A stretch of DNA of 64,000 bases. It comes from Saccostrea echinata (Eukaryota). The stretch is from NCBI RefSeq assembly GCF_033153115.1, contig NW_026889772.1, positions 930,001 to 994,000 on the forward strand, written 5' to 3'. Positions 12,039 to 63,935 of this stretch are shown here, piece after piece; position 1 is the first letter of the stretch, and every line of letters starts with the position of its first letter. The translations under genes and the position numbers were made by a program. The notes below the pieces were generated by a model. It saw nothing but the letters and a program-made list of their open reading frames with translations. It ran no database searches and had not been told where the DNA came from.

Positions 12039-12084
12039 ATGGGTCCTCTGTTTGTTCTGATATTCCTCAAATTCGCCCTGTTCG
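12039..12084 (+). CDS. Gene 1 first coding exon, signal peptide (MGPLFVLIFLKFALF)
   Basis: Acceptor ttgtAG just before the ATG at 12039, hydrophobic peptide, phase-1 donor GTGAGT at 12085 that joins in frame to 13557. Confidence 0.8.
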
Positions 12085-27000: not shown

Positions 27001-30000
27001 TCAAGAGGGACGTTAAACAAAATACAATCAATAAATCAATCATCTATGATTTTTCCTAAGCCCAGATTGATACTGACAGTAGGTTATTCGACTCAAGATA
27101 ATTATCTTAAGAGGTTTTATAATTATTTAAGGCCTGTAAATGGTTTTCCTGAACAACGTGTAACACTGAGACCTCTATAACTGTATTGATATGGTCATTA
27201 TATTTATACAATGATGTAATAAGTGAATAGCCCTATTCTTTGGTAATTTTTCCATTTTTAAGTAAAATATTAAACAGTTTTGTAAGAACTTCTTAAATGG
27301 TATTGTTGTTTGCTTTAATAAACTCATTTAAATTAAGTCAGGCCCAGCACTTTTACCATTTTTCAGTTTCAAAATGCTTTGTTTTATTTCATCTTGAGTA
27401 AACAAGAAGTCTATAGGATTTAGTACCTTATTTTGGTCAGTATACTTGTATTTTGAGGTCTTTGATTTATTTTCTTTCATCTTATTCAAGAAGGCTTTTG
27501 GGTTTTATGGTGAAAGTGATTCAATTTCTTCCCCAGTACGGTGATTATTTTAAAATTAAATAAATATTAATGAATATTAACTAAATAAAATTATAATACA
27601 TGTAAATTATAATAAATTCTACATGCAAACAGAAGTAGAATGCATGGTAGCAAAATGATGGATCATATTAAAGGAAATAAATGCCATCAGCAATTTCTTT
27701 AAATTTACTCTGACTTTGACCTTTGACGATCAACTTTCCTGATCAAAGGTCAAGAGTTCCTTCACAGGTGCTTTCATGTTTCTTCGACTCTTCGTTTAGA
27801 AGTGAAGAAAGCCTTTCAAAGAACTTGAATCTACCTCTTAAAGCTTCTGCCATAAATTGTCTCGAATCACTCTTGGAGGAACGTCAGTGATTAGCGTTAT
27901 TAGCACTTTTATTGCGTTCACCCCAAAGGTGGGCTAGAAAAAATTTCTTGTCATGAGATAGCATTTATAAGTATTCTCTATTTCTAGATAATTACTGAAC
28001 TGAACCATAAGACATGTATAATGAAACGCAAAAGAAACGCAACATCCTATTTTAGGGGGAAATATTATATAATGGATATAATTTTGCATCTAAAAAGTAA
28101 GGACATGTTCAACTTTGCAAATATCGGTAATTTAACGGTTGAATGATTTTCAAACCATTACCGGAAGTTAAGTTTGAGTCCGCTAAACAGAAATAAAAAA
28201 TTACATGTTTAACAAAACATTTGGCAATAATATGGGGTTTTAAGGGTTTGTGTCTGTCTATCATAAGTAATGCAGCAATATTCCGATAAATAAATTCCCC
28301 TGTCTTTTCCGTAAGCGATGCCAAGGCTTCCTGAAAATGACTTAAGTACGCATTTCCATTGCTCTAGCTGGAAAATCTTAAAATAAAGGCGATGGAGAGT
28401 TGCAGATGCAAATATGCACTACATCACGCCTCAACAGGCTCTTACGTATCATTAGCATGAATGACAGTCCTTGGACCGGAAGTCCAATTGTTACCACCTG
28501 CTCTAGGCTAGAGAAAATTCGACCTTATCATCTGAAAAATATGCATTTAAGGACATACGCAACGTAGTTTGAACTTTATTGTCTTTTCCCCTGGAGTTGA
28601 AGAGTTCCAATACTTAAAGGAATTGTGTGCTACATTTGTATGTCTATATATGCTGTTGTACACTTCTTCTAAACAAGTTTGGACAAACAAAACATCTAGA
28701 ATATGTGTTTAGTAATTTTTGTGTATTTTTCTTTGAATTATACAAGAATTTTCATCAATTTATATCTTTTCAAAACCCCTGGTAATGCATGCTGATTTTT
28801 TGTCGACGAACATCTGATGGCACTATAACCTTAAAGTAAGAATATCTTGAAAAATTATCAGTAGGTAAGGTACGTTGCGTATGTCCTTAAAAATGGCGAA
28901 GAATATTCCTTCTCTCAGATCTCGAGGTTGATGAACCTATTGCATCGTAGAAATCAAGCTGCAATTGTTGTGCATGGCAGTCTTGCACGCTGTAATTGAA
29001 TGGCCGGGGCGGGGGATGTTTTAACGTCATGAGTTACTTTCTAAAGTTAAATGATAATCATTTAACATTTTTATCAAATCTCTGATGTTTTTAAATCGAG
29101 TTTTAACTTACTGCATTCATTTTTGAAAATCATAAGATAAAAAATTCAAATATTTGTAGATTACTGCTTGTTGCGTTTCTTTTGCGTTTCAGTATATAAT
29201 CATATAAATAAATAATGTTTTAAAATCAATATTTATGTATCGAATACTACAAGATATAAAATATTACAAAATAGAATGAAATGTAGTAAGAAAAAATTTA
29301 TAACTACCAGAATTATGTAATATTTGCCGTGAAAACAATTTGAAGGATGTAAACTATTGAAAATCAATGAAACTGCTTATAAATAAATCACTAGAAAGAG
29401 GCTTGCATTTATTGAATAGGAGATGATAGTAACATCGTGCTTGTTGGCTTTAGATAAACAAAAGGGAAACGTTTATTAATAAAGAAAATTGATATGAAAT
29501 GTGCCTCTGTTCAAACATATTCAGGGTGTATTCAACTCGATAAAATCGGTAATTCTGCGTATTTTCTGAAAGGTTTTGTACGTTAAAAAATAACATTTTA
29601 TTTTAAATGACTTTCTCGAGAAAATTCTCATTAATTTGAACACATTTCCACGCTTTGTTTTGGTTCTCGTGTAGGTAGTCCAATCTTCAAATCCTGAAAA
29701 TCAGGAGTTGGGTAATTGAAAATGACCAAAAAATATGTCTTCGAATTTTCAAAGTAATATATATTAAACATGGTATTTCAACAAAATTCATCATTTACAT
29801 ATTATCATACCATGTATGGAAAATTATCAAATCTCAAATATATTTTCAGGAAATGCGAATAAAAGCACCCACTATGTATTTTCTAATTGAAAATTCATCA
29901 ACAAATATATTTAAGGATAAAAAACTATAGGCATTTGGAGAAAATTGCATGTTTTTTTAATACTTATACGGTACTTTAGTTCTTCTGTTTACTACAATTG

Positions 30001-33000
30001 TTATATTATATATATATTGTGTAAAACGTTTGTGCTATCATTGTGAGACTTCAAAGAACACTTCTAATTTCATATCAAGTAATACACATTGGTATATAAG
30101 GCTAGATTCAAGGAAATTCAATTTCTCTTAAATGTATTTATTTTTGTACTTTTATGGGGTTTAAATATCAACATTTTACAATATTGTTTCCAAGGCTTCA
30201 AAGAACCTTGGATCTATTGAGATGCATAAAATGAAAATTGTTGCACGAGACGATTTCAATTTCAAGCTTCATTTTGAGACTTTGTTAATTACATACTAAT
30301 TTTAAGAGTTATCCTTCCTGGCTGAGGAGCGATATCCTTAAATTATTTTCTTAATTTTTCATTCCATTCACCATACCATTATAGCTTTGACTTAGAGAAA
30401 ATGCATCTAGATGCCAAATATATTTTACCTTTCAAATGCTCGGAAGGATATTACGTACGTATCACTTATCTCAGAAAACGTGTAAATAATTAAAACATGA
30501 ATTTAATTTCCCGTCAAATACTAATGATGTACACGGAAACTTGATTGACAATTTTCTTGGTTTCACTTTATTTTCACTTTCTTCTCCTTAGGAATAGACT
30601 TTGTAATAGATATGATTAAATTTCGACAGTCTATTTGTACGTTAAACAGGAATTTGTTTACCTGCACCGAATAAAGATTTTGATCTAAACTAGAGATGGA
30701 TTCTTTTTAAATTGGTAAAGTGGTAATTGGAGCTGATATAGACTTGTCATCAGAAAATGTTTTCTGTTGGTTTAAGCAGCTTATCTTAATTAAATGCTAA
30801 TCATACAGGAATTTTTTAATCTATATATTTTATTAATTAGTTTATTTTCTTTTTTGTTGGACAGGTGAATTGCAGCGTTAGCGCCCAGTATTCTAACAGT
30901 GTACCTGGTTCAACATTTACAAGCCCTAAGTTCTTTGCTGGTGTCAAGGTATTCATAAAATCCATCCGCTTAATATGTTTATTTTCTCGAGATTTTACAA
31001 TGCAAGTTTTAGCTTTTAAGGATTCTTATCATAATTTGTACCGGAGTTTATTCATTTAAATTCGTAATAATTGAGAATGACTTTCAAAATTTGGTGTTGC
31101 TGGTTATTTTATATACTATGGAATCATTAATGTTCGGGGGGGGGGGGGCAATGTTTGTGGATTTCGTGGGTCATCCTTATCCACGAATTTACATCCCCAC
31201 GAACAATTATTTTGTTAACATATTTATTTATTGAATCTTCTGTATATACAAGTTACCCACGATATATTACGTCCCCACGAACCAACAAAATTTTGCTTGC
31301 CCACGAACATTGACCCCCCACGAATTAAAATAATTCCACATTACCTTTAAGCTCTGAAATTTTAATACCACGATAGAAGTTCTTTAAATATAAGTAATTA
31401 TTACATGTATACACATCTACAATGAACTTAAATTTATGTATTGTACATCTTTTTCATATTTTTGTGAAAATCTGTTCTACAGAATATGCTCAAATTTTAA
31501 TCTTATCTCCTAAGCAAAAGTTGAATTGAAGTTTCTCTTGTTATTAGGTAAACCAGACATTTGTAGATGTAGACGAAGGTCAAACAGTAGCCATAGAGGT
31601 CACTAGCACACTTCCGGTTGGTTGTAGTGTATCATTATCTGAGTCTGAGAAGGAAACTAATTGTAAGGGGACTTTGTACATAAGAACTACGGAGTATTGG
31701 CCGTGGTGCTGGAACGGAGTTAAATATCTGTCGGCAGCATTTCCCGACAATGGATGCCAGCTACATTTCTCGTACAAATATTGGTACGAACCTGTCCAAT
31801 TAAACATTACAGGATATATGGACGGAATGCGAAACTGGTGGTACAAGTCGACTGACATTAAGCTTGAGCCTGGCACTGACAGCAATCACCTCGCATGGGG
31901 GAACATGCAGTTTGATGATACCATTGCTGTACGAATCTTATGTTAAAATATGATAAACTAGAGAATAAAAACATATACAAATAGGTTGATTTTAAAGGTT
32001 ATCGACAGCAGCAAACTCTATCAGTTAAGAATTTAGTACTGGATCTTCCTATTTTTTGTACTTGTTTTTTCTCTAAAATATTACAGTTTGAAACATAGAA
32101 ATGTGTCAATCCCTTAATTGTTCTGAATTACTATAAGGATTTCTTGATTTCATTTTAATTGAAATTTATCATTTCTTCAGGTCAGAGTGCATGACAAAGA
32201 CACGAGTGGGGGAGGTATATGTAGCTCCTATAACGATCCTCATATGCAGACATTTGACGGAATATACTGGGAAAATCAACGCGTGGGAGAATTCGTCATG
32301 TATAGACACAAGTCTAAGCCTTTCTCGGTACGTACATGTAACTAGAGCTTCTGTTTGAGGGATTTAAATTTGAGATTAATTAACTTTACCTTAATTAACC
32401 AGTATATTCTACTCATAATCTTGTTACTTTACTTTTCTTTATAGTCTTGGAGTGTGAGTTTTAAAAAAATCACATTCTGATGTCAATGGGGGGTCGTGGT
32501 AAAATAACACACCCGAGTTTATATCTATTTTCTATTTTAAAGACATATTGCATTTTTTTAAGATGATATAGATAATATGTGCCCCCCCCCCCCCCAATAA
32601 AACAAATAGATTTTTTTCGGCATATGTATGTTCTATAATAGACGTTTTTCAACACAGCCCCAACATGGACGTCTGAATACGAATTTTAATACCCATATTC
32701 AAAGGCGATATAGGGTTGTTTAGACTCGTTGAAAGGTAAATAAAGTAACAAAATTATGAGTAAAACGTATGGTTTATTAATGGATACCATGCTTTTCACA
32801 GGGGAACGCATATAATACAAGAAATAATACCTGAAGCGAGCGTAAATCGAAGGTTTTTACAATGCTTGTATCTGTAGCTCTCCAGTTTTTCTGTCTGAGT
32901 TTTCTCAACCAGAGAGCTACAGTTCTGCAACTAAAAAATTATGTATAATAATATATTCATCAAGAATGTCATCTTTAGGCCAATATTTCTTTTTAATGAT

Positions 33001-42000: not shown

Positions 42001-45000
42001 TAATTATTTAAAGAGCGTTTCACATGATAAAACATTGTTTTAGAGACCTGTAGTTGTGATTCCAGTCACATTGGCGAGGATTGCTCACATGACTTACAGA
42101 CTCCCCCAGCAGAAATCAGCGTCCCTAGCCACGGGTTATGTGACACGAGAAACCGGCCTTGTCTGACACAAAACATCGTGGGCGTTTTCCATATAGCACC
42201 CTATGCCCTGGCTCAACATTTTAAGGTAAGAGGGGTTTTTTTTTATCCCATAGTATCTTATTCTAAACATGACCAAAAACCAAACAGATGAATTTCTTTC
42301 CTAAGGATGCTGATTGTACGGGGCAAAAATCATTCATTTTATTGATATTGGTTCTAAATACTATGATTGAAACACATTGCTAAACACTATGTTAAATAAC
42401 CCAGATATTTTTTTACACAAAAGTTTTATCAATATATAACATGTCAAATAAATGGTAGAGAACCTAGCAGATCAAAATATAGACCAAATAAGATCTTTTT
42501 TCATCATTTCAATATATTGTTGCCAAGTGACTCTCATATTTGGTATATAGCCTTATGGAAATGTAGTGAGGCACGGGGGAGTCATCAACAAAAATAAAAA
42601 TTAATAAATGTCAATGATTCCAGGGTTTTTACCTGAACATCATTTCACTTCTTCATTGTCCCTGACCTTTGCAATCTGACCTTTTGTTAGGGCATTGTTT
42701 TCACACTTACTATGACTACGGCTTACTACGTTTACATGATCAATACAGAAATCTTACGGCGGATGTGACTGGTCGACAGGGGATGCTTACTCCTCCCAGG
42801 CACCTGATCCCACCTCAGGCATGCTTACGATTCTTACTGTTTACAAGATTTAAGAGATCGATCTCATCTTCACCTTTTTAACCTCAGACATTTACACACG
42901 TACAATTAAACCAACTATCATTCACGGTTAACTTTTATATGCAATTTATCAGTTTGAAATCCATCGGCTATTATTTATTTATTTCTACTAAGGAAACATT
43001 CTACACAAATCACAATTAGATAGTTTTTTTTTACCAGCGATAATTATTAGCAGTAAAAGAAGGTCATGAATCTCCTGGATGTTTCTCGCAATAAAATGAA
43101 AGTCAAACCCCGGTCGATATACAGAGAATTATGACAAAACCAATATATATAACTTAACCGTGTTTGAGAGTTATAATAAATATAAATAAAGTGAAATAAG
43201 GGAATTTATACAATAACTCAATCTTCTACAGGCAACAGAAAGTGGTAAAGAGTACAGTAATTACAGCGTAATGGCGAACGTGACGTTACGCCAGCTGAAC
43301 CTTCTGACTGTTACCATACCAACCTATCCCACGTCGTCAAGGAGACGACGCTCCACAGACGGTTCAATACATGGTTGGGATTTAAGCTTTAGTTACGACA
43401 ATTCTACCTTCAGCAACTCTACTTCCGTTGTTGTGTACAATGGCGCCTCCGAATCGTGCGACTACACAACCTATACATGTACCAAGGTATAATTACAATC
43501 ATTTAGTGTGGAGCTACACGTATTCACTTGATGCTATTAATTTTCAAGGTTCTTTTATTTTATCACTTTTGGGACAATTTCTACTTAATTTGTACAGAAG
43601 AAAATTGTTCAAAAGAGATTGACATTTATTTGATTTAAGAACCTATAAGATTCTAAAACTTAACGAAGTCTAAACATAGCATTGAACTATAGTTGGTTAT
43701 TCATATCAAATAATATATGTATGTGTGCATGAATTTGGACTATATGCTTTGAATAAATATGAAAAAGCATGCAGATCTCTACATCATAGTATTTTTTCAT
43801 TGTATTTTGTTCATATTTCAGTTCACATCCGTTCAGGAGGAGTCAGGTAAATTCCACTAAATTCAATATATAATGTATATAATGGTACTATTAATTATTT
43901 TCATTTTCAAAATGTATACCTTTTAAGAACTTTAAGAACACTGAGTGATTGAATTCAGGAAGCTTGAGTTCTCAATATTGAATATATCATTTTTTTTTTA
44001 CAATTTTAATCCACCTTAATTCAAAAAAGGTTTATCCATTGTGGATTTCGACTCTTCCTATGAAATCAGTACAAGTTCAAGCGTGAGTATATACTAGTAT
44101 TCATTGTGTTATCAAAAGCAGTCCTTTGAATCGCAAAAAAAAACTTTTTGTATTTCCAGGCGACAATTCAGTTGCGGCGGCAGCAGCAGGTGGCGCTGTA
44201 GGTGTTGTGGTTGTCTTGGTGATCGTGGGAGTTATTGTTTATTATTTTAAAGTCATCAAAAAGTAAGACTTGAATATAATATTTATAATTATTATCATTA
44301 TTGATTATTATTAATATTGGCTCATCGGTTGTTAGTGCCTGTTTCCAGTTAAAATAAGAACTGGACTAGCATTATTCATTAATCAAAAACTCCGCGCCTT
44401 TTTGACTGTTGAACTGATATGGCCCAGAATTTTGTAAATACAATGTATTTGAAACTATAGTTGATGTATGTTGTAGTTGAAATTTCGAAAAAACAATAAT
44501 TTATTTAGAAATCTGCATAAATTTATCACTCACACAAACATATTTTTGTATACAAATATTACATAGATATGTTTTATTGAATTTGAATGTCCACACTTGA
44601 TAAGGAATAAGTAAAACTTTAGCATGACATCTGTTTTACAGTTTGTTCAAACCTGATCTTTTTCAGTAAAAAGTTATCCCTTTATAACTAGAGTTGTTGA
44701 CACCGCTCACATTTAAGTAACTTTATTTCATTTTTTCCCTTTGAGGCACGAGTTTCTTTTAAGCTTGTAATTATCAAAATTATGTTTGATAAGTTTGGTG
44801 AAGATAATAATATAAATACGTTGTATGCCTAGTAATTTTTTCTGTCAGTGAATGAACCGAGTGTTACAATGAAAAATCAACTGGGATAAATTCTATTAAC
44901 TATTTCCAGCAAAAGACCATCATCAGCTAAGGTTGGTAGCAGTGACAGGGAACTACTAAACTTAAAACAAGACGAGGAGGAGCCTCCCCGACCACCGACC

Positions 45001-45033
45001 GTCAACTCGTGGGTTTCAAATATGAAGAAATAG
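12039..45033 (+). CDS. Gene 1: membrane-anchored, mucin-like VWD + EGF (VWDE-like) protein, about 3139 aa; join(12039-12084,13557-20281,21058-21076,24757-25022,30865-30948,31548-31928,32181-32327,33714-33920,34170-34378,39926-39991,40081-40324,40516-40665,41178-41364,42044-42225,43232-43486,43822-43846,44160-44262,44910-45033)
   Basis: All junctions are GT-AG with compatible phases; the summed CDS is 9420 nt (divisible by 3) and ends in TAG at 45031-45033. Motifs: signal peptide MGPLFVLIFLKFALFAQA, VWD CSSYNDPHMQTFDG and TEGLCGTYNGD...[37 protein letters not shown], TM helix. Exon-for-exon paralogy with gene 2. Confidence 0.88.
13557..20281 (+). CDS. Gene 1 giant exon (6725 nt): 30 x 64-aa repeat followed by a Ser/Thr-rich stalk of about 280 aa
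   Basis: Open frame from the acceptor at 13555-56 to the GTAAGT donor at 20282. Same frame as listed ORF 19457-20332, which starts late because the repeat has no start codon. Confidence 0.88.
13688..19447 (+). repeat. Coding tandem repeat, 192-bp unit x 30 (CTYYTDHFGSSF[Y/S]GGSYSVGPCTDTTWYPSSSYPYTDSNGFT[H/Q]WTTTNSFYTDTNHYPYTSSSS)
   Basis: The TGT (Cys) anchor recurs at 13688, 13880 ... 19256, exactly 29 x 192 apart. Confidence 0.97.
20345..20760 (+). mobile_element. Degenerate Penelope-like retroelement 3' fragment
   Basis: Broken frame reads LTTKLYD..NIPLSPAYGVHVSQLIR**RACS..KLLTNKLMKQ, which I recall as the C-terminal RT region of Penelope-like elements; followed by the CAGGGGATGCT..CTCCTC..GGCACCT motif. 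Confidence 0.7.
21058..21076 (+). CDS. Gene 1 19-nt microexon (TSTPAI)
   Basis: Polypyrimidine tract plus AG and a GTATGT donor; converts phase 0 to the phase 1 needed by the next exon. Confidence 0.7.
22860..23190 (+). mobile_element. Helentron/HINE-like fragment with satellite-like internal repeat
   Basis: Duplicated GAAATTG[C/G]ATATGCAG.TATTTTACCAGA.AATACA.GTCA.GTT.GAATTT block and a GCGGGGGACATTAGTG..stem-loop..CTAGTT end. Confidence 0.5.
24757..25022 (+). CDS. Gene 1 exon, Ig-like/VWDE N-terminal region (VTVDPPTLSL...YNIQWYIN...RLNMN)
   Basis: ORF 24762-25064 trimmed to AG/GT; homologous to gene 2 exon 57417-57676. Confidence 0.88.
25801..26174 (+). mobile_element. tRNA-derived SINE, same core with a different head
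   Basis: GGTAGCTCAGTGGTAGAGC A box, shared core, (ATCA)n tail, TSD TCTATGTA. Confidence 0.82.
26781..27042 (+). mobile_element. SINE copy with internal deletion of the B-box region
   Basis: Same family as 11086; TSD TCTATGATTTTT(T)CC at 26766-80 and 27043-56. Confidence 0.85.
28551..28886. mobile_element. TTAA-flanked MITE (Kolobok-type)
   Basis: TTAA|GGACATACGCAACGTA ... TACGTTGCGTATGTCC|TTAA, perfect 16-bp TIR. Confidence 0.82.
30865..30948 (+). CDS. Gene 1 exon (VNCSVSAQY...FFAGVK)
   Basis: AG/GT bounded; homologous to 57854-57940. Confidence 0.88.
31116..31341. mobile_element. TA-flanked MITE, degraded (Tc1/mariner-type)
   Basis: CTATGGAATCATT ... AATAATTCCACA imperfect TIR with internal CCACGAA repeats. 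Confidence 0.55.
31548..31928 (+). CDS. Gene 1 exon (VNQTFVDVDEG...FDDTIA)
   Basis: AG/GT bounded; homologous to 58079-58462. Confidence 0.88.
32181..32327 (+). CDS. Gene 1 exon, start of VWD domain
   Basis: CSSYNDPHMQTFDG...GEFVMY matches the VWD N-terminal C-x-x-x-GDPH-x-x-TFDG signature. Confidence 0.9.
33106..33589. mobile_element. hAT-type MITE
   Basis: 8-bp TSD AAATTGAT; TIR TAGGGCTGTCACG / CGTGACAGCCCTA; subterminal ACCGA/TCGGT repeats. Confidence 0.88.
33714..33920 (+). CDS. Gene 1 exon, VWD middle (VHALFSAC...CNCGVAV...SRYR)
   Basis: AG/GT bounded; homologous to 58844-59053. Confidence 0.88.
34170..34378 (+). CDS. Gene 1 exon, VWD C-terminus
   Basis: TEGLCGTYNGDTSDDF...FAVSWR is the VWD hallmark. 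Confidence 0.9.
34549..36084. mobile_element. Non-autonomous hAT element, 1.5 kb
   Basis: 8-bp TSD ACATAAAA; TIR CAGGGATGGG / CCCATCCCTG; subterminal GTAATCGATTA(C) arrays at both ends. Confidence 0.88.
37619..37799. other. Assembly gap (181 N)
   Basis: Run of N. Confidence 1.
38402..38650 (+). mobile_element. Penelope-like 3' fragment
   Basis: Same family as 20580-20760. Confidence 0.65.
39120..39445 (-). mobile_element. Helentron/HINE-like fragment
   Basis: GACGCACGACGACGGAC tract and terminal hairpin TAGGTCACCTGAGTCACCCAGGTGACCTA. Confidence 0.5.
39926..40665 (+). CDS. Gene 1 exons 39926-39991, 40081-40324 (Cys-rich, RRKR) and 40516-40665
   Basis: Phases 2/2/0 are consistent; homologous to 62451-62510, 62613-62871 and 63081-63230. 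Confidence 0.85.
40800..41000. mobile_element. TA-flanked MITE (Tc1/mariner-type)
   Basis: TA|CTGTAAACCAACT ... AGTTGGTTTACAG|TA. Confidence 0.8.
41178..42225 (+). CDS. Gene 1 exons 41178-41364 and 42044-42225, encoding the EGF-like domain
   Basis: [28 protein letters not shown] spans a phase-1 intron. Confidence 0.88.
41576..41681. repeat. 50-bp direct tandem duplication, intronic
   Basis: ATTCAACCTTGATTCAAGGCAG.CTAAATCAACTAAGGATTAAATGTCAA occurs twice. Confidence 0.9.
42665..42830 (+). mobile_element. Penelope-like 3' fragment
   Basis: GACAGGGGATGCTTACTCCTCCCAGGCACCTGATCCCACCTC motif. Confidence 0.6.
43232..45033 (+). CDS. Gene 1 terminal exons 43232-43486 (RRRR), 43822-43846, 44160-44262 (TM helix) and 44910-45033 (cytoplasmic tail, stop)
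   Basis: TM segment VAAAAAGGAVGVVVVLVIVGVIVYYF is followed by basic KVIKNKR; phases 0/1/2 are consistent. Confidence 0.82.
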
Positions 45034-45340: not shown

Positions 45341-45342
<2 letters not shown>

Positions 45343-46034: not shown

Positions 46035-46077
<43 letters not shown>

Positions 46078-48259: not shown

Positions 48260-48290
<31 letters not shown>

Positions 48291-52500: not shown

Positions 52501-52695
52501 TCCGCGTGAAATCATAAGGTCAGTACAGTATATGTATTCATTTTATTTAAAACCTGTTAAATTTAAAGTTACAATAGAGAAGAATAAACACTCAAACAAA
52601 ATAATCCATCTCCTTTTCCTGTCTTTTTAGTTAATTTGGATTGGGCTTATTTATGTATTTTCCCATTCAATACCAGGTTTTTAATTCCAGATAAC

Positions 52696-52759
52696 ATGTT
52701 TACCATAAGATGGTTGGTCGTTGTCTGTCTGTGCCTTTTGAGTTGTTGCCAATTCACAG
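52696..52759 (+). CDS. Gene 2 first coding exon, signal peptide
   Basis: ATG at 52696, hydrophobic core, phase-1 donor GTAATT at 52760 in frame with 53599. Confidence 0.8.
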
Positions 52760-55700
52760 GTAATTAACGCAGAGAATATAAGCAATTGATACCATGTCAT
52801 TATTATCATTCAAAAAAAGAAATAAGTTCTTAAGAAGAACGACTACATTTTGAATACACATTAATAAAGAAGTCACAATGCACGGCATAAGGCGGGTTCT
52901 TAGATAACATTCTTTTATGTATTGTTTATCCTATATCAAGCAGTACAAGGAATTTATTATTATCAATGATATAATTCCAACATCATGGCACCTACATATC
53001 ACAGAAAAGCTGCAGAGACAATTCAACATAAACAGAATTTTTAAAGAATTTTTGATTTTTAAAAAATATATATAATGACCTTATTAGCAAATATAATCTG
53101 TCATTAAGTCGAATGCTGACTGATTTTTTCATACTAATTGTTAGGCCATTTTTTAAACACTGAGTTATATACGGATTTCTCCGTTTGCCCGATCATGATA
53201 ATGAGCAAATGGTGCGTGTGATCGGTTGACAGGGGATGCTTACTCCCCCATGGCACCTGATCCCACCTCTGATCTTTTTTAGAGGTCCTTGTTTGGCCTG
53301 TTCCTGAATTTTTTCTTTCAATGGACTTTGGAGCTTGATAACTGTACTTGATAACTCTCCATATTTCCTATGAGAATATAACAGGAGAACCTAGCGTACA
53401 ATAACCAAGGAGTAAAACAGTATCTAATGTTAACTCAAAGTGATAGATTCTACATGTTTCTGCATTTTTTCATTGTCTTCTGACCGGTTAATTTTTGGTC
53501 ATATTTTATTACATTCTTCAAAAACAAAGTATTTTCACCTTAAATAGACGTGGACTACAGTATTTCTAACTGAACCCGTATCTAATTTATTTTTACAGAA
53601 ACATCATCAACGATAGATTACTTTACAGTTACAAATGCAACAAGTCAAGAAAACACAACAGAGATAATTTTAGATTCTACAAAATCAGATTACGCAACAA
53701 AAACGCCTGATATAGAAACAGAACAAACGGCATTTAAAGATGAATTATCTAGTATAGACTCTGTTACCACAGATGGAATGACAAAGATGACTAATCAGTC
53801 TGATAGTTCCACAGTGACTGAATATACGTCAACTGAATTTACGCAACGTATAGCTACAAATGCCTTATCATCATCTGTCACAGAGAACTCGAACACAAAT
53901 ATCAGTCCCTCAGCTTATGAATATACAACAGAAACGCCTACTCAAACTGACGATGAGTCAACGAAACATTCTACAGACTATGCAACGATGGAAGAATCAA
54001 CTACTGTCGACCAAGCAACATCAGAGGTTTCAATCGTTACCAGTGAGGTAACAACGAAAACTTCAACAACTTATGGCCATGCAACAATAGAGGATTCACC
54101 AACTACTAATAACCACGCAGCAACAGAATATTTATCATCTAAAGACCACACAACAACAGAATATTTATCAACTACAGATCACGCAACAACAGAATATTTA
54201 TCATCTACAGACCACGCAACAACAGAAAACTCAGCTACTACTGATCATGTATCAATAAAATACCCCATCAATACTGAACAAGCAACGACAGAATATTCAC
54301 CCAATATTGATCATGCAACAAGAGAATATTCAACCGCTACTGATCATGCAACGACAGAATATTCAACCAATACTGATCATGCAACAAGTGAATATCCAAC
54401 CACTACTGATCATGTAACAACAGAATATTCAACCACTACTGATCATGTAACAACAGAATATTCATCCAATACTGATCATGCAACAAGAGAATATTCAACC
54501 GATACTGACCACGCAACAACAGAATATTCATCCAATACTAATCATCAGACAACAGAATATCCAACCACTACTGACCATGTAACAACAGAATATTCAACCA
54601 ATACTGATCATGCAACAAGTGAATATCCAACCACTACTGATCATGTAACAACAGAATATTCATCCAATACTAATCATCAAACAACAGAATATTTAACCAA
54701 TACTGATTATCCAACAACAGAATATTCATCCAATACTGATCATCCAACAACAGAAAACTACAATCAAACGGACAGCACTAGAGGAGATCATAAAACCACG
54801 GACTACACACCGACGGAAAATAACGAAACAACGGAACACAATACAGCTGAAAACACAACCAAGGAAGATAATCCCACTGACTTTACAATGACAGAAGAAT
54901 ATAACTTAACTGACTACACAACAACGGAAAACTATAAAATCACAAACTACAAACTGTCAGAAGATTATAACACCACAGATAACAAAACCACGGAAGAATA
55001 TAACACATTAGGTTACACAACGAGGGAGGATTTCAACGTTACAGATTACATAACTGCAAAATATAACAAAACAGACTACACAAGCACGGAAGATTATCAA
55101 ACAATGGACGATACAACGACTGAAGATAATAACATAAATCATCCAACAACGGAAAATTATATCGTAACGGACAATACAACTGACGATTACAACGTCACTG
55201 ACTACAGAACCACGGTAGAATATACCACAATTGACAACACAACAACAGATTATCACGATACCAACCACACAAAGGAAGGATATAACACAACGCACTTTAC
55301 AACAACGGAAGATTTCAATACAACGAACCTGACATCGACGGAAGAGTATAACACAACAGATTACACAAAAACGGAAGATTACAATACAACAGATTACATG
55401 TTAACGCAAGGAAATAATTCCACTCAATACACATTGGACGAATTATACAACATTACGGACGACACAACCAGGGAAGATTATGGAACAACAGACTATACAT
55501 CGAAAGAAGTTTACATCTCATCGGACTACACATCGACGGAAGATTATAACACAACAGTCTACACATCCACGGAAGATTTTAACACAACGGACAACACATC
55601 AACGCCAAAATATAACAGCACAGACTACACATCAATTGAAAATAGTAACACAAATGACTACACAACGACGGAAGTTTATAATACAACAGACTACACAGCA

Positions 55701-58700
55701 ACGGAAGATTATAACACAACGGACTACACATCGATGAAAGATTATAACACAACTGATCACACAATGACGGAGCATTATAACACATCGGACTATACAGCCA
55801 CGGAAGATTTTAACACAACTGACTTCATATCGACGGAAGTTTATAATACAACAGACTACACAGCGACGGAAAAATTTTACATAACAGAATACACAACAAC
55901 AGAAGATTACAACACAAGTGATTTCACATCGACGGAAGTTTATAACACAACGGAATACACAACAACGGATGTGTTAAATGCAACTGAATACACATCGACG
56001 GAAGTTTATAACATTACAGAATACACAACGACAGAAGATTACAACACAACTGATTTCACATCGACGGACGTTTATAACACAACGGAATACACAACAACGG
56101 ATGTGTTTAATGCAACTGACTACACATCGACGGAAGTTTATAACACAACGGACTTCACAACGACGGAAGAATTTAACACAACGCAATACACAATGACAGA
56201 AGATTACAACACAACTGACTACACAGCGACGGAAGATTTTAACACAACGGAATACACAACGCCAGAAGATTACAACACAACTGACTACACATCGACGGAC
56301 GTTTATAACACAACGGAATACACAACAACGAATGTGTTTAATGCAATTGACTACCCATCGACGGAAGTTTATAACACAACGGACTTCACAACGACGGAAG
56401 ATTTTAACACAACGGAATACACAACGACAGAAGATTACAATATAACTGACTACACATCGACGGAAGTTTATAACACAACGGACAACCCAACGACGGAAGA
56501 ATTTAACACAACGGAATACACAACGACAGAAGATTACAACACAACTGACTACACAGCGACGGAATTTTATAACACAACGGACTACACAGCGACGGGAATT
56601 TATAACACAACGGACTACACAGCGACGGAAGGATTTAACACAACAGAATACACAACGACAGAAGATTACAACACAACCGGCTTCACATCGACGGAAGTTT
56701 ATAACACAACGGACTACACAGCGACGGAAGAATTTAACACAACGGAATACACAACGACAGAAGATTTCAACACAACTGACTACACATCAACGGATGTTTA
56801 TAACACAACGGTATACACAACGAGAGAAGATTACAACACAAATGACTACACATCGACGGACGTTTATAACACAACGGACTACACAGCGACGGAAGAATTT
56901 AACACAACGGAATACACAGCGACAGAAGATTACAACACAGCTGACTACACATCGACGGACGTTTATAACGCAACGGAATACACAGCCACGGAGGAATATA
57001 ATGTCACGGACTTTACAACACATGACAACACAACAAACATTCAATATTCAACAACGGAAGACTCTGCCGGAAATTATACTACATCAGGCAAATTGTCTAC
57101 TACTCTTGATGCACAAGGTATATGTATCTTCGGTATCTTAATTGAGCATCTTACGTTTTGCCAAATAATACAGTTCATAAGATTAACAACCTTTTTACCT
57201 TGATAATTAAGCAAACAAACGTTTGCATTTTAAGTGAATATTTTTTTTACATAGAACAAAATGACAACACATGAAAATCCTTATCAATAATTTTTTTATT
57301 CGTATCAATCTTTTATGTATCGCATTTATCCATGGATCTTTTACTGAATATTTCCGGTAAAGGATGATCGCAAGTTTTTACTGCCTTCACAAAGATATTT
57401 CATTTTATAACCACAGCAATGGTTGGGATACCATCAGTCATTCTATCACCTGAGGTTGTTGCCGAGCGACAGCTATCTGTAGACGGTACGAGATTCGAGC
57501 CAGTGATGCTCTGTCTTTTCCCGAAGCCCATGTCCGGCCTTTTTTACAACTTTAAATGGTTTATCAACAATAATCTATTAGAAAAAGCCTTATTTGATGA
57601 CGTGGCAGAGGCAGACATCAACACCACTGTACTCCGCCCTTGGCACTGGGCATCACGATATAGCATGAACATGAATGTAAGTGATGAGAAAATTAAAACT
57701 TAAGATAGCATGGCTTCAATTCCCAGAAATTATTCATTTCTAGTAATCTTTAATTTCACAAATAATTCTTGGATTTATTTTTATTTTTAACGTGTTTCAG
57801 TTGTTTCTGATAATTTATTTACCCCTAAGTTAGGATGGATATTTATTTTTAAGGTAAGATGTTCAGTGAGTGCCCAGTACGTGAAATGCAGCACTGCTGG
57901 TGAATCATTCAAAAGTCCAGCCTTTTTTGCAGGCATAAAGGTAAGCTACATCATTTAGCAAAAAATACACTAACTCATTTTTTATCGACCTAACTTTCTA
58001 AACATTCGATTTTATATGGAAAAGACTGATTTACCTTAAACAAATTAAATGTTTGGCGTGCATTTTATCGATTTTAAGTTTGGAACAACATGGACCTCTG
58101 TTGAAGAAGGAGAAACCGTTTCGGTGTCGGTTACCAGTACGCTTCCGGTTGGCTGTTCTGCCTCTTTGACCGATTCTGATAAAGAGGCGAAATGTAAGGG
58201 AAATCTACACATCCGCTCCCTGGATTGGCGTTGGTGTTGGAATGGCATCAGCAATTTGAATGTAGCATTTCCTGATAATGGATGCATGTTGTCCTTTCCG
58301 TTCAAGTATTGGAGGGAACCAGTACTCCTTAACATCACTGGATACGTAGATGGAAGACGCAACCGGTGGCGGAGATACGGAAGAATAAGGCTCGAATCTT
58401 CCACAAACCCGACAGATGCCTCTAACGCTTGGAAGAATATCAATGTTCCGCAGACCTTATGGGTACAACCATGATCTCTGTATAAAGCATTTAGTTTATA
58501 TTTTGAAATTGCAAGCACTTGTTCAAAGCAGATAACAGTTTCAATTTTTTTTCTTGAATATGAATGAAGAGAAATTGCATTTGGTAAATGTATAAATTCA
58601 TTCCGCAGGTCTCTGTCTATGATAAATCTGACTGGGGAGGACACTACTGCTACTCCTTCAGTGATCCCTATCTCTACACCTTCGATCGTCGTTTTTATTC

Positions 58701-61700
58701 CAACCAGAGAATTGGCGAATTCGTCATGTATCAGCATAAAAAGTTGCCTTATTCTGTAAGAGTCAATTTAGAAGTTCCAGATAACTCTCAAAATGGACAT
58801 TCATTGATTTGATTAGCAATCATGGTTTTTCTCTATTGTATAGGTCCATGTTTTGTACTCTTCATGTTTTCCTTGGAGGAGAGCTTCCTGTGCATGCGGT
58901 GTTGCAATTAGAAGCGGAAGTAGCTTGTATGTTGTTCGCACATGCGTAGAAATATCATACCGACGCAAAAAACTCCTGAGTATTCCTTTTGAAATGTACA
59001 GCGGCTGCAATGAGGACGAATTGGTTGTCCGGAAGAGATATTCCTGGTACAGGGTAAGTTTACGTTATATTTCATTTTATTCAGATATATAATTTTCTGT
59101 TGCAAAACTTTGGCAAAAAAAAAAAAAAAACGCTATAATGAGATGAACCAACCAAGTCCATACTGACAGATATAAAAATGAGTACGTTTCATCTGCGAGC
59201 TAGCACGTTTACTAGGGGCATTTACCCGTGACGATACAAATCCCCGTGGCTTGTTCTGATTCTAAACAGGTTACAAAGAGGTTAATCGCATAATAAATGA
59301 AGTCAGCGAAAAGATTCAAAGTCACAACAATTCTAATTAGAAAACAAAGAGCATAAAGTGTTCAGCAGAAATATTTTCACTCAACCTTTATACATATGAT
59401 ATACACATTTTATTTCGAACTCGACTCAGAACAAACCTGTGCTCGGTGTTTACGAAAGCTTTGAAGTGTGCACCTGTCACTGATTTCTTTTGTTATTCAT
59501 GACCAAGGGACCACACCTTCAAAACACAGCTTCGTAAGTTGTCCATTAATTTTGTTTGTTTGTATGTTGTTTAACGTCCCTCTCGAGAAATTTTCACTCA
59601 TATGGAGACGCCACCACTTGCCGATGGAGAGCTGCAAATTTTGTCCTATACTCGGCACTTACGGCCATTGAGCAGTGAGGGGTCTTTTTCGTGCCAGCAC
59701 TTACTGCGACACGGGGCCTCGGTTTATACGGTCTCATCCGAAGGACAGGTCTCCACGTCCCACAGTGGGATTCGAACCCGCGACGTAAGGATCAACTCCT
59801 TACTTCGCGACTCTAGAGCAGACGCTCTAACCACTGCGCCACGCGGGTGACCGTAAGTTGTCCATATCTATTGTTTGACATTTTCAGATGTTGACTCAAA
59901 TAATAAAGACATCAGTTAATAATATAATTTAACTCTTAAGGATTTTAATAGAGGTTCAAAGTTTGACGAGTAAGCTTTAGACCACAGATAAAACTTATCG
60001 ATGCTGCAATGAATTTTTCGCCATATTTTCATTAAATATGTCCTGTTTTTGCTTTGATACGTCCTGTATTTCGGCATCTTCCCAAGTCAAGGGTTTCTGA
60101 TCCACTCTGCTCCACATAAATATTTGACCGAATAGACTGACTTTGATGGAGTTTACAATCGCGCCATCTAGTGAGATTACACATTTTGAACTCTATTGAC
60201 CTCTGCTATTGACCAATCAGAGTAAGCGATTTAAATAGAGAATGCGAGGCAATATTGAAAGTCGGTTAAAAAATTCAGCTTAACTTTAAATCCTTGACTT
60301 GGGAAGATGGTGTTTCGGGCAATAATATATTTATTGGCTTCAACACGTGAAGTAATTCTTCTTTTTGGGGATCAACAAACTTTCCTTTCCTTGGCGCGAT
60401 GAAAAGGTACATATTTTTATTACAATGTATTTGATTTTATTTGGGGGCGCTACAGTTTTCTACTTTATTCTAGAATCTTCTCCGTTGATGTTCATTATAT
60501 GACATGAGTATGATTAACTAAAGGATAATGAAATCATTGATGTGTATTCTTTTAACATATGTCGACATTAAGAACCACTACAGAGAGGCTAGGAAATCAA
60601 AGTACCATCGTAATTATACTTCTAGAATTTTTTAAAGATCTAAATGAACTTTTGTTACGAATTCGATGTGTTTGCTCCGGACCATGTATACATGTATTTT
60701 AGGATTATCTAGGTAACACTGGGAAGTGGAACTGAAATAGGCTTCTACGTCAGTAGATGGTCCAAATGGATCACGACTATTCAGATTGTGTCCTCCACCC
60801 TGGATGCCCAGAATGTAGAGGGGCTGTGTGGGAACTATAACGGCGACTGGTACGACGATTTTATTCCAAGAGGAGAATCCAGCTCAACTTGGAACAAGAA
60901 TAAATTCACTCTGTCCTGGAGGTACGAGCAAATGTCAGTCTAAATTCGAATCTCCTATGGGTTGTGGTTTGATATGATTTTTTATTACATTTTCAACAGT
61001 GAAATATTATAATCTATTATTAAGTAAAACTGATATTCTGTCACAGAGTGAATAAATATCAAAGTGATATACTTTCACGGTGTGACAGAATTTAAGAGGT
61101 GCGTCAAAACTCTCTGTTTTCCTTCCCTTCATGAAGAATGTAAAATAAAATACTCCTTGTAATAAGAGTGAATAACCCATGCTGACAGCGATGATATATG
61201 GAGATAACAAACAGTAATCAAGCTCAAAAGTCCATTGAAACAATAAAAATAGAGAGCAGAGCAAACACGGACCTCTAAAAAATACCAGAAGTGGGATCAG
61301 GTGCCATGGAGGAGTAAGCATCTCCTGTCGACCGGTCAAAACCGCCATGTGTTCCTTCTCATGATGGGGCAAACAGTTCAGTATGTAAATAATGGCCTAA
61401 AAATTAGTGTAAAAACGTCAGTTAGGATTCGACTTAATGCTAGATTGTACTTGCTGACAAGGTTATCGTATCCACCATAGAACATACGAAATGTCGACTT
61501 TAAACGAGACTGTTGATATCCTTGTTTCATCACCTTGTTTGTCAACAGCTTGCATCGTTTTAGAAATTGTTCGTACCTGGAGCATGATCTTGTGTATCAA
61601 ATCAACTGGAAGATATAAACCCCATAATTAGGTGAAAAGAGACTAAATCAGCCAAAGTTTTTTTTTATTCCAAATACACGTTGTAGAAATCCATTTTTAC

Positions 61701-63935
61701 AATTCTTTCAATCTCACAATCGTTAAACTATGGCTTCTCAAACCCTCTTCTATGACGTCACACCTATATATGACACTGTGCTACAAAAAGACAGAGGCAA
61801 AGGGAAAATCAAAGATATGTAATAAACAGAACATTCAATGTTTTGTACTTGAATATAGAATTTATTGCACTCGTGAGACGAGATTATTTAATATTTTCAT
61901 TCGTGCTTCGCACTTGTAAAATTATCAAATAACCTTGTTTCTCTTGTGAAATAAATTCCACATCCAGCTTCAAGACATTGAATATCCTCTATTATCCAAC
62001 GAGTTGTGTTTTTATCCCCAGGCCTTGGCGAGGAATAAAAACACACAGAGAAGCCACATGCTTCACATATAGCTATTTTATGTTTTACACTGTTTTATAT
62101 ATGTTAATCCACAACATTTGACTTTATCAAATTCACATAAAAAACATTGTGACGTCATCACCGTGGATATGAAAACGATACCCTGTGAGGTATATCTACT
62201 GTACAAAGAAGTAAACATGTGACAAATAAAGCTTATTTAATGCTTTAAGCCAAAATTATCCGCTTCCGCTAGTATGATGCTACTTCCGGACGCATTGATC
62301 TGATTTTGAAACAGCAAAGGTGGAATCACGATAAGGATCCGGATAACTAGCAAACCAGTGTTGGGAATTTGGTATTTCTTAGCTCCTCATGTCTCTTTAC
62401 GATGAAGCAATAAATGTATAATATGTATATACATTCTAATGCTATTTCAGAGTACCTTGGAGAGACAGTCTTTTTGCAAAGAACCCAAAGGCTCTTTCTG
62501 GAGATGGATCGTATGTGTCTTTTTTTTTATTTTAACAAATGAAAATTTTTGCATAAATATTAAACAGAAATACATTATATGTTATTTTACCGCAAACTAC
62601 TCTTTATTTTAGAGTAATTAAGACTGATCCTGTTTACCATACAAAATTTTGTACATGTGCATCGTACTGGAGCGTTCGAAGTTCTTATTACCGAAACTAT
62701 GCCAAATGTAACCTGGAGGCTCCTACAGAACCCTGCTCCAGTCGCGTCAGTCAAACTGTTAACGTCTGCTCACAAAACAGGCGAAAGCGAGACACGGTAG
62801 ACTCTGATGACGTCATGGATGACGAGGAATTTGGCTACGACCCAGAATATAACGACACAATAGAACTACCTGTGTGTCATTTTGTTTTTTATGTTTAGAC
62901 ATAGCAAGTTGGCCATAACCTTAAATGTTAATCACATCAATTCTATAAGTAAAATTTTTTATAGAAGTTTCCAAAATATCATCAATAAAACCACTTTCAG
63001 AATACATGTAATTTAGTAAAATTCTGTAAGAATCACCTTTTTTTATCTGTGCACTGCGTGAAACCGACTTTGTATAACAGGAGGCCACGTGGACAAACGG
63101 TTGGAACGAGACAGCAGCCACGGACTACTGTAACAAGACTTTTGCCCTGGACCCAGTGGTATCCTTCTGTATAGAACAAGTAAACACCAGCATCACCAAG
63201 TATGTCAATGGCTGTATAAGTGATATTGAGGTAAGCAATTAAAGAAAAGGAAAGTATATCAATGGCTGTATAAGTGATATTGAGGTAAGCAATTAAAGAA
63301 AAGGAAAGTATATTAATGACTGTATAAGTGATATTAAGGTAAGTAATTAAAGAAAAGGAAAGTATATCAATGGCTGTATAAGTGATTTTAAGGTAAGTAA
63401 TTAAAGAAAAGGAAAGTATATCAATGGCTGTATAAGTGATATTAAGGTAAGCAATTAAAAAAAAGGAATTTGTATATTGGAGGGTGGTATTTTAAGTTTC
63501 ATTTGTAGACATATGTATATTATTACAAAGTTTAAGCAGGTGTGTTAAAAGATGTGTATCCTAAAGTTTATCAGATAAATAAAAGGTCTGAGACCTTTTG
63601 TGTCTGTATCTGTGATATGTAATAAATTATTTTTATCACTAATTGAATTATCTTGTGTATTGTACAATACAGTGTAGGAACTTATTAAACATAATATAAC
63701 ATATTGATTATCATTATTAAACATGTCCAGAAAATAGGAAACACAGACTTTGTGGAGGCAACACTGGATACTCTGAAAAAGGAATGTGTAACGACTGCGT
63801 CACGTGACGAGAGTTTCCAAAAGTCTGATAACTCTAGCTCTAACAGTACAGATGGCGAGAGTGTTAGTATCCTGGATGTGTTATCAACCATGGTTTGCCC
63901 AAAGAACTGTTCACAGAAAGGGGCCTGTGTCAATG
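52696..63935 (+). CDS. Gene 2 (3'-partial): paralogous VWD + EGF (VWDE-like) protein; join(52696-52759,53599-57117,57417-57676,57854-57940,58079-58462,58609-58755,58844-59053,60713-60921,62451-62510,62613-62871,63081-63230,63731-63935,...)
   Basis: Signal peptide MFTIRWLVVVCLCLLSCCQFT; GT-AG junctions at the same positions and phases as gene 1; VWD motifs CYSFSDPYLYTFD and VEGLCGNYNGD...FTLSWR; EGF start CPKNCSQKGACVN. Runs off the window. Confidence 0.88.
53085..53345 (+). mobile_element. Penelope-like 3' fragment in gene 2 intron 1
   Basis: Same family as 38402-38650. Confidence 0.65.
53599..57117 (+). CDS. Gene 2 giant exon (3519 nt): Thr/Asp/Glu/Tyr/Asn-rich repeats
   Basis: Contains ORF 53778-57203; acceptor ttttacAG at 53597-98 and donor GT at 57118. 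Confidence 0.9.
54110..57020 (+). repeat. Coding repeats: 33-bp/11-aa (TDHATTEYSTN-type, about 54110-54760), then 30-bp/10-aa (TEDYNTTDYT-type, about 54890-57020)
   Basis: Visible in both the DNA and the ORF translation. Confidence 0.92.
57417..59053 (+). CDS. Gene 2 exons 57417-57676, 57854-57940, 58079-58462, 58609-58755 and 58844-59053
   Basis: Each aligns by eye to the matching gene 1 exon and is AG/GT bounded. Confidence 0.88.
59547..59851 (-). mobile_element. SINE copy, reverse strand
   Basis: Reverse complement of the 11086 family; perfect 14-bp TSD CGTAAGTTGTCCAT (59533-46 and 59852-65). Confidence 0.9.
60075..60309. mobile_element. MITE with 18-bp TIR and 9-bp TSD
   Basis: GTATTTCGG|CATCTTCCCAAGTCAAGG ... 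CCTTGACTTGGGAAGATG|GTGTTTCGG (one TSD mismatch). Confidence 0.78.
60713..60921 (+). CDS. Gene 2 exon, VWD C-terminus
   Basis: VEGLCGNYNGDWYDDFIP...FTLSWR; not in the ORF track. Confidence 0.9.
61200..61640 (-). mobile_element. Penelope-like 3' fragment
   Basis: Reverse complement of the same family, including a degenerate RT end. Confidence 0.65.
61992..62230 (+). mobile_element. Uninterrupted, partly deleted copy of the same palindromic repeat family
   Basis: ATCCAACGAGTTGTG...GCCTTGGCGAGG.ATAAAAACACACA, then TGTTTTACACTGTTTTATAT and CATTGTGACGTCA as at 9346-9420. Confidence 0.65.
62451..63935 (+). CDS. Gene 2 exons 62451-62510, 62613-62871 (RRKR), 63081-63230 and 63731-63935 (EGF start)
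   Basis: Homologous to gene 1 exons between 39926 and 41364. Confidence 0.86.
63198..63467 (+). repeat. 54-bp unit x 5 spanning an exon end and its splice donor
   Basis: Units start at 63198, 63252, 63306, 63360 and 63414. Confidence 0.95.

Follow-up and report, generated by a model that had tools for sequence, protein, structure and literature searches.

One predicted membrane scaffold of the VWDE-like family carries different giant repeat exons in tandem genes of the oyster Saccostrea echinata

The 64,000-nt window of the Saccostrea echinata RefSeq assembly that is analyzed here (C23:930001-994000, where C23 is the contig holding the window; positions given without the contig name refer to the window) raises the question of how neighboring oyster genes that encode the same scaffold came to carry giant repeat exons with nothing in common, and what kind of proteins such genes might produce. 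The original prediction, made from the DNA sequence, described two adjacent paralogues. These two genes, referred to here as G1 and G2, do lie in tandem on the plus strand, with nine collinear exon pairs showing 48 to 62% identity in a translated self-comparison, and the group is extended to three by another tandem paralogue, G3 (LOC133191576), located ~60 kb downstream of them. The proteins have a common layout that includes an immunoglobulin (Ig)-like domain, a beta domain, the VWD domain, two furin motifs, the Vwde helical domain, a single EGF domain, a juxtamembrane beta domain, a transmembrane (TM) helix, and a short tail. It appears quite probable that G1, G2, and G3 encode type I membrane glycoproteins of the bivalve VWDE-like family, with a giant repeat polymer, encoded by a single exon, as the N-terminal head.

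Splice sites were set using oyster proteins as guides, and homology searches used single exons or database proteins as queries. The G1 model consists of 18 exons with a coding sequence of 9420 nt (3139 amino acids), and the G2 model, which encodes 2060 amino acids, consists of 16 exons, the last five of which are at C23:994185-996650, extending 2.6 kb past the end of the window. All introns in both genes are of the GT-AG type, each frame has a single terminal stop, and all scaffold exons are intact. An independent model of G3 proved to be 100% identical over 868 amino acids to the RefSeq protein XP_061183307.1. The spliced scaffolds of G1 and G2 are 52% identical, as are those of G1 and G3, and those of G2 and G3 are 55% identical. 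The intron positions and phases, initially described as identical, are indeed shared among the three genes for all scaffold introns but one: the intron that follows a short linker exon (66 nt in G1, at 39926-39991, and 63 nt in G3) is absent from G2, where a shorter version of this exon is merged with the one after it. A microexon of 25 to 37 nt precedes the TM exon in all three genes. The earlier list of G1 exons had missed three short ones, namely, 21058-21076 (19 nt), the 66-nt linker exon, and 43822-43846 (25 nt), and a direct join of 34378 to 40081 has been superseded by the model that contains the 66-nt exon. A run of undetermined bases at 37619-37799 falls in intron 34379-39925 of G1. 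Phase 2 is shared by the end of the preceding exon and the start of the following one, and the protein sequence across this intron (SWR/VAQGSSDSLF) is collinear with those of Crassostrea virginica, Crassostrea gigas, and RefSeq XP_061183306.1, with no residues lost. Judged by phase and collinearity, this assembly gap is intronic and no G1 coding sequence is missing there.

As originally predicted, a multi-kilobase exon comes right after the signal peptide exon in both G1 (6725 nt) and G2 (3519 nt), and the two exons are unrelated: BLASTP detected no similarity between the G1 and G2 cassettes (E = 4). Both repeat arrays are enclosed in single long plus-strand open frames, 13541-20329 (2263 codons) and 53586-57200 (1205 codons). 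In G1, Tandem Repeats Finder (TRF) identified 30.0 copies of a 192-bp unit with 98% identity at 13682-19440. The encoded 64-residue unit is as had been described, with two Cys residues placed 21 residues apart (20 between them) and not a single N-x-S/T sequon; it is 15% Tyr and 41% Ser plus Thr, and the array is followed by a Ser-rich tail of 280 residues. Taken as a whole, the G1 cassette contains 298 Tyr and 60 Cys residues and almost no Lys or Arg, with Ser and Thr making up 42% over 2244 residues. In G2, TRF revealed nested arrays of 33, 66, 99, and 165 bp at 54112-57001, with the 11-residue consensus [STA]-T-E-[DV]-[YF]-N-T-T-[DE]-[YF]-T. The acidic, sequon-rich character ascribed to these units is borne out by the 67 N-sequons of the giant exon, its net charge of -201, and its 20% content of Asp plus Glu; Ser and Thr make up 38% over 1174 residues, and 87 of the 123 Tyr residues of the cassette directly follow Asp or Glu. 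The matching slot in G3, also of the phase 1-to-1 type, is occupied by an exon encoding a 330-residue Thr-rich mucin sequence. The fact that the slot runs from phase 1 to phase 1 means that the cassette could change without breaking the frame.

Both arrays carry the signature of coding sequences. Variants among the G1 units occur at ~0.25 per synonymous site and 0.11 per nonsynonymous site (pN/pS of ~0.44). In the G2 array, it is the third codon positions that vary most (entropy of 0.89 bits, versus 0.53 and 0.58 bits at the other two), as expected for coding sequence. The chemistry of the cassettes suggests dense O-glycosylation of the predicted products of all three genes. It further suggests disulfide-closed loops with abundant Tyr in G1, and dense N-glycans, with Tyr residues in a sulfation-like acidic context, in G2.

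The G1 cassette had been assumed to be lineage-specific, which turned out not to be the case. A search with the G1 giant exon retrieved a sole relative, C. virginica XP_022327920.1 (E value of 1e-263), in which ~15 units of 57 residues are followed by a different Ser-rich array and then by the scaffold; C. gigas XP_019929857.1 contains four 65-residue units of the same Cys/Tyr type, compared with 30 units of 64 residues in S. echinata. In these G1 orthologues, as well as in C. gigas XP_034336338.1, the Cys/Tyr units, the Ser-rich array, and the anchor come in the same order as in G1, with Ser-rich arrays that are not alike. Across the three species, the unit is nearly the same over its first 44 residues, and the last 13 to 21 are variable. 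The C. virginica protein is currently annotated as “threonine-rich GPI-anchored glycoprotein PJ4664.02-like” and those from C. gigas as “serine-rich adhesin for platelets”; both of these automatic names are misleading. Within the S. echinata genome, the module is found at this locus only, and the unit matched no Pfam family and had no relative in the ESM Atlas. Cassettes of the G3 type consist of ordinary Thr-rich repeats and are not the same in C. gigas, C. virginica, and S. echinata. Thus, the idea that a constant anchor displays chemically different polymers stands, with a shared type I scaffold and a cassette of its own in each paralogue: the predicted anchor stays the same, and the head appears to be conserved in G1, ordinary and drifting in G3, and unusual and without relatives in G2.

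Joining the G1 cassette to its scaffold requires an additional exon. The donor of the giant exon (20281) is strong and in phase 0, and the Ig exon begins in phase 1, so that direct splicing would lead to an immediate TAA. The frame is restored by a microexon of 19 nt (21058-21076) that has an extended pyrimidine tract and an AG/GTATGT donor, and the resulting junction, TSTPAI-V-TVDPP, parallels TSTSPSIA-V-TVDPP in the C. virginica orthologue. A one-base assembly error or a null allele in G1 was considered and dropped, as the microexon restores the frame and fits the Crassostrea junction. The RefSeq start exon 22872-22919 was also dropped as a candidate for the linking exon, given that it is not conserved in the orthologues and has no good phase-0 acceptor. 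The 776-nt intron in front of the microexon contains, starting 8 nt past the giant-exon donor, a dispersed repeat (20289-20741) for which the genome has thousands of candidate copies at 70 to 93% identity. Since the cassettes of G2 and G3 are each a single phase 1-to-1 exon, this G1 intron may have arisen with the insertion of the dispersed repeat.

The pre-VWD domain, the beta domain that precedes VWD, serves as a marker of the family. A profile built from the G1 and G2 exons for this domain found 58 relatives among 1.84 billion representative proteins, and all 31 of those whose source was looked up were bivalve VWDE-like proteins or unnamed fragments. The S. echinata genome carries 16 copies of this domain, three of them in tandem on C23 and the rest clustered on C54, C29, C51, and C1. 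Further tandem clusters of VWDE-like genes were seen at C54:46.07-46.19 Mb (four copies of the pre-VWD domain), C54:59.00-59.05 Mb (four copies), and C29:35.19-35.34 Mb (three copies); the RefSeq proteins from such loci have D8C heads, not repeats. More generally, distant members of the family bear D8C (uromodulin-like) or YWTD propeller heads.

Scaffold identity to Crassostrea proteins reaches 77% both for G1 (with C. virginica XP_022327920.1) and for G3 (with C. gigas XP_034336322.1). In the maximum-likelihood tree, the three mucin-head types form one clade with 100/100 support, and the G1 type and the G3 type each unite Saccostrea with Crassostrea, again with 100/100 support, which places the duplications before the split of the two genera. 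G2 is a sister to the G3 type (93/94). With respect to their defining domains (the pre-VWD beta domain, VWD, Vwde, and EGF), G1, G2, and G3 are members of the bivalve VWDE-like family. The same four domains are found in VWDE-like proteins such as C. virginica XP_022331704, S. echinata XP_061187077.1, and the Mytilus models, most of which also have the furin motifs, and the orthologues of the G3 type already bear the VWDE-like name. However, most members of the family carry a D8C or an LDL-receptor YWTD head in place of the repeat polymer seen in G1, G2, and G3.

The domain structure of the scaffold was examined using an AlphaFold2 (AF2) model of the orthologous scaffold of the G1 type, built on a 29-sequence alignment, which had a predicted local distance difference test (pLDDT) score of 74. 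The VWD domain is recognized by Pfam (PF00094) on the exons and, with an E value of 3.6e-12, on the orthologues; its fold and profile matches include the D assemblies of MUC2, MUC5AC, MUC5B, VWF, and FCGBP (Foldseek matches to MUC2, MUC5AC, and VWF D3; PDB profile match to FCGBP with an E value of 2.4e-47). The helical domain corresponds to Vwde (PF26129), as indicated by precomputed hits on the orthologues P0096, P0103, and P0105 and by the ESM Atlas clusters, which carry PF26129 at 96%. The EGF domain that follows it is matched by the Pfam families EGF_Teneurin and EGF_2. The two furin motifs are kept in all paralogues, in all orthologues, and in the 29-sequence family consensus, which makes shedding plausible. 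The cytoplasmic tail contains a Pro-rich motif common to G1 and the C. virginica orthologue. The combination of a signal peptide, a TM helix, and a tail predicts a type I membrane protein.

Such proteins would be expected to stand on an epithelial surface, holding a heavily glycosylated polymer hundreds of nanometers out. Cleavage by furin in the course of secretion would yield two parts, a large outer subunit and a stub in the membrane, which the split juxtamembrane domain could hold together until the outer subunit is shed. The exon slot would let the repeat arrays expand, homogenize, or be replaced, leaving the anchor untouched. The likely setting is the mantle or another mucosal epithelium, where these proteins could contribute to the glycocalyx or barrier and possibly serve as a released matrix component.

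The RefSeq annotation of the locus gives a different picture. XP_061183306.1 (898 amino acids) starts at an intronic ATG at 22872; its residues 18 to 551 correspond to G1 residues 2265 to 2798, and its residues 552 to 898 correspond to G2 residues 1714 to 2060. It is made of the intronic start exon 22872-22919, the G1 exons from the Ig domain to 40324, and the G2 exons from 63081 to the end, and left out of it are seven exons of G1, nine of G2, and the two giant exons. By the coordinates of its exons, this model is a chimera of G1 and G2 that lacks the giant exons. Its identity to the respective stretches of the two proteins confirms most of the junctions in the present models, and the lack of the giant exons leaves the cassettes unannotated in this genome. 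In Crassostrea, the G1-type cassette and scaffold are joined in the RefSeq models XP_022327920.1 of C. virginica (2447 amino acids) and XP_019929857.1 of C. gigas. Moreover, spliced Logan contigs, for which mRNA is the only possible source, span the region from the Ser-rich array through the whole G1-type scaffold (e.g., 970 amino acids on a 3654-nt contig), and many Logan contigs with these transcripts come from Crassostrea sequencing runs.

Membrane mucins are well studied in vertebrates and hardly at all in molluscs. Vertebrate MUC4 has an N-terminal repeat polymer encoded in one huge exon, followed by VWD, EGF, and a single TM segment, and is cleaved into two associated subunits. The MUC4-like arrangement noticed at the outset holds as a similarity in the layout of the repeat polymer, VWD, EGF, and TM, and goes no further: Pfam scans of P0059, P0072, and P0096 found no match to the MUC4 domains NIDO (PF06119) and AMOP (PF03782). 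Unlike MUC4, the VWD domain starts with NDPH or SDPY instead of GDPH, there is one EGF domain, Ig-like, beta, and Vwde domains are added, and cleavage is predicted at furin motifs. By these features, G1, G2, and G3 are not MUC4 orthologues. The vertebrate VWDE is a secreted protein with many EGF domains and neither a TM segment nor a mucin head; the G1-type proteins differ from this general description, the only form in which VWDE was used for comparison, in having a single EGF, a TM helix, and a cytoplasmic tail. Gel-forming mucins and FCGBP contain repeated VWD-C8-TIL units and CK or other multimerization ends; here, there is one VWD, followed by a region predicted to be disordered, with a short Cys-rich stretch. 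As judged from the AF2 model and furin motif 2, the juxtamembrane domain may resemble the SEA domains of MUC1 and MUC16 and the heterodimerization domain of Notch in being cut in a loop, with the chains held together noncovalently. However, the cut would be made by furin and not by self-cleavage as in the SEA mucins; Pfam scans found no SEA domain, and the juxtamembrane fold was not matched to either the SEA or the Notch domain. In common with mucin-type membrane glycoproteins, long Ser/Thr-rich repeats encoded in single exons are found here on a predicted type I membrane protein. The products of this locus, which by their domains belong neither with the SEA-type or gel-forming mucins nor with zonadhesin, can be described, by their layout, as a putative novel form of membrane-tethered mucin on the bivalve VWDE-like scaffold. 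The literature on these gene identifiers, on molluscan VWDE, and on Crassostrea membrane mucins yielded passing mentions only, and no paper on these genes was found. In a 2026 paper (PMC13664851), a C. gigas gene with the automatic name “serine-rich adhesin for platelets” was reported as mantle-biased within a biomineralization module, although its identity with the G1 orthologue could not be confirmed.

Several observations weigh against the assignment of these genes to tethered mucins. In S. echinata, RefSeq joins neither giant exon to the scaffold, and the joining proposed here is predicted from splice signals, matching phases, intact frames, and orthologues; similarly, the 19-nt and 25-nt microexons of G1 are putative exons placed by homology and splice signals. 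G2 sits on a long branch (0.54, versus 0.14 to 0.15) and so could be decaying or evolving fast, and homology searches, which were of limited reach, found no orthologue of the G2 type. Relatives of the G2 cassette were also sought, with nothing retrieved except low-complexity noise, a blank made weak by the limits on query length. A single-sequence AF2 model of the G1 unit was uninformative (pLDDT of 33). Finally, the VWD domain starts with NDPH in G1 and G3 and with SDPY in G2, so in the absence of the self-cleaving GDPH, self-cleavage of the MUC4 or MUC2 kind should not be assumed.

The annotation problem is the basis for an alternative, highly improbable on the present evidence, in which the giant repeats are satellite DNA located in introns or between genes, or one of the genes G1 and G2 is a pseudogene, and the real products consist of the scaffold only, as in RefSeq. 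XP_061183306.1 does leave out both giant exons, but it is a two-gene chimera that starts at an unconserved intronic ATG. A stop-free tandem unit can give long frames by itself, and the opposite strand of the G2 array does have an open frame of 270 codons; against this, the arrays bear the coding signature, and neither G1 nor G2 has a damaged scaffold exon. Likewise, G1 without the 19-nt microexon meets a TAA at the junction; nevertheless, splice sites and phases connect the signal-peptide exon, the cassette, and the Ig exon in all three genes, and the G1 cassette and its junction are conserved at the protein level in the Crassostrea models and spliced transcripts.

If the polymers are real, they might still serve outside the membrane. 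These proteins could be precursors of a secreted matrix (the organic matrix of shell or periostracum, or cement), in which case the anchor would only deliver the polymer and furin would free it into mineral-associated or cross-linked Tyr-rich material. This possibility, unlikely but deserving of attention, is favored by the two conserved furin motifs and by the chemistry of the cassettes, acidic and Tyr-rich in G2 and rich in Tyr and Cys, almost without Lys or Arg, in G1. The mantle-biased C. gigas gene mentioned above would also speak for it if it proves to be the G1 orthologue. However, the conserved TM helix and cytoplasmic tail, including its Pro-rich motif, argue for a function at the membrane, and the literature yielded no shell or cement proteome in which these genes are named. 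A related and rather doubtful extension is that the cassette slot is a general oyster means of mounting nonmucin structural polymers on one anchor, so that the G1 unit would represent a small module of a new type that folds or can be cross-linked (through disulfides or Tyr/DOPA), the G2 11-mer would be a previously unseen N-glycosylated and Tyr-sulfated array, and both would be released by furin for periostracum, cement, or specialized mucus. A role in gamete-surface recognition, with fast-changing repeat heads aiding species-specific fertilization, has very little chance of being correct. Zonadhesin, the model for such a role, is a type I protein of sperm that combines a mucin-like domain with VWD, EGF, TM, and a short tail. 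The similarity to this layout, the long G2 branch, and the differences between cassettes, both among the paralogues and, for the G3 type, among C. gigas, C. virginica, and S. echinata, all speak for it. On the other hand, the G1 cassette is conserved across genera and is not fast-changing, and the oyster proteins have no MAM domains and one VWD without a series of C8 and TIL domains or repeated VWD-C8-TIL units. On balance, membrane glycoproteins of the VWDE-like family with repeat heads remain the preferred reading. The features on which it is built are listed in Table 1.

Table 1. Features of G1 and G2 in the window and of the AF2 model of the orthologous G1-type scaffold
Feature	Position	Strand	Basis
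G1 exon 1 (start codon plus signal peptide; phase 1 at its end)	12039..12084	+	ATG, hydrophobic leader, TCG/GTGAGT donor
G1 giant exon (6725 nt, entered in phase 1 and left in phase 0), made up of a short head, the array, and a Ser-rich tail	13557..20281	+	Single open frame, phase-1 AG acceptor, GTG/GTAAGT donor; C. virginica orthologue has the parts in the same order
G1 array: 30 x 192 bp = 30 x 64 aa	13682..19441	+	TRF, 98% identity; unit register; locus-unique in the genome
G1 19-nt microexon, phase 0 to 1	21058..21076	+	Polypyrimidine-AG acceptor, AG/GTATGT donor, Crassostrea match
G1 Ig-like domain, exons 24757-25022, 30865-30948	24757..30948	+	Weak Pfam Ig_2/Ig_3; confident beta sandwich in AF2 model of orthologous scaffold; junctions as in XP_061183306.1
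G1 127-aa beta domain, 4 Cys	31548..31928	+	No Pfam family; marker of bivalve VWDE-like family; folded in AF2 model
G1 VWD, starts with NDPH, exons 32181-32327, 33714-33920, 34170-34378	32181..34378	+	Pfam VWD, profile 1-37 and 117-151; Foldseek; PDB profile
Assembly gap in G1 intron 34379-39925	37619..37799	.	Phase-2 flanks; continuous protein versus orthologues and RefSeq
G1 linker exon 39926-39991 and Cys-rich exon 40081-40324, furin motif 1 RRKR/S	39926..40324	+	91% match to C. virginica orthologue (P0096); predicted disordered; motif in all sequences
G1 Vwde helical domain and single EGF, exons 40516-40665, 41178-41364, 42044-42225	40516..42225	+	Precomputed PF26129 on orthologues; AF2 helices 546-613; EGF_Teneurin
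G1 juxtamembrane beta-domain exon, furin motif 2 RRRR/S	43232..43486	+	Alignment; motif in low-confidence AF2 loop
G1 microexon 43822-43846 (25 nt), TM exon 44160-44262, cytoplasmic tail and stop 44910-45033	43822..45033	+	22-residue hydrophobic helix, then basic residues; tail matches C. virginica orthologue (P0096)
G2 exon 1 (start codon plus signal peptide; phase 1 at its end)	52696..52759	+	
G2 giant exon (3519 nt, entered and left in phase 1), with 11-aa units following a Thr-rich head	53599..57117	+	Sequons, codon-position entropy
G2 scaffold exons in the window: 57417-57676, 57854-57940, 58079-58462, 58609-58755, 58844-59053, 60713-60921, 62613-62871, 63081-63230, 63731-63935	57417..63935	+	Last seven G2 exons = XP_061183306.1 residues 552-898
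AF2 scaffold: Ig-like sandwich	residues 1-118		
AF2 scaffold: second beta domain	residues 119-252		
AF2 scaffold: VWD	residues 253-447		
AF2 scaffold: disordered stretch, Cys-rich linker, furin motif 1 (residue 508)	residues 451-520		
AF2 scaffold: helical bundle (Vwde domain)	residues 523-616		PF26129 by precomputed hits; helices 546-613, four-helix segment
AF2 scaffold: one EGF	residues 617-668		
AF2 scaffold: juxtamembrane beta domain, furin motif 2 (residue 746) in low-confidence loop between strands	residues 669-797		
AF2 scaffold: TM helix	residues 815-834		

Additional repeats and remnants were seen in and around these genes. The region 63198-63468 contains five tandem 54-bp copies (94% identity), each comprising the last 33 nt of the G2 exon 63081-63230, its GTAAG donor, and 16 nt of the intron, which results in five near-identical donors; owing to a TAA in the intronic portion, the frame stays open only when the first of them is used. 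The terminal coding exon of G3, which encodes the tail, occurs again (~60% identity to the C. gigas tail) at C23:1069174-1069248, 4.4 kb downstream of the annotated one, and this extra copy may be either an alternative 3' exon or a duplicated remnant. Between G2 and G3, on the minus strand (C23:1020682-1023922), there are open frames of 541, 154, and 223 codons that resemble retroelement reverse transcriptase and endonuclease. At the other end of the locus, two arrays of a 33-bp satellite in opposite orientations (1799-2495 and 6979-8051) flank the first run of undetermined bases (8313-8463) and give rise to long spurious open frames on both strands.

Molluscan mantle, gill, and shell-forming surfaces depend on both secreted and tethered glycoproteins. 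At this locus, three old paralogues combine one predicted anchor with three chemically different heads, including a conserved Cys/Tyr module that has no known relatives and an extreme acidic array of potential N-glycan sites. One RefSeq model fuses two of these genes and loses ~10 kb of coding repeats, and with the models wrong at this locus, oyster expression and proteomic studies will miss or misassign these proteins. The main practical value of this analysis is in fixing the fused and truncated annotation, and the corrected gene models provide testable targets for work on mucus, shell matrix, and adhesion.

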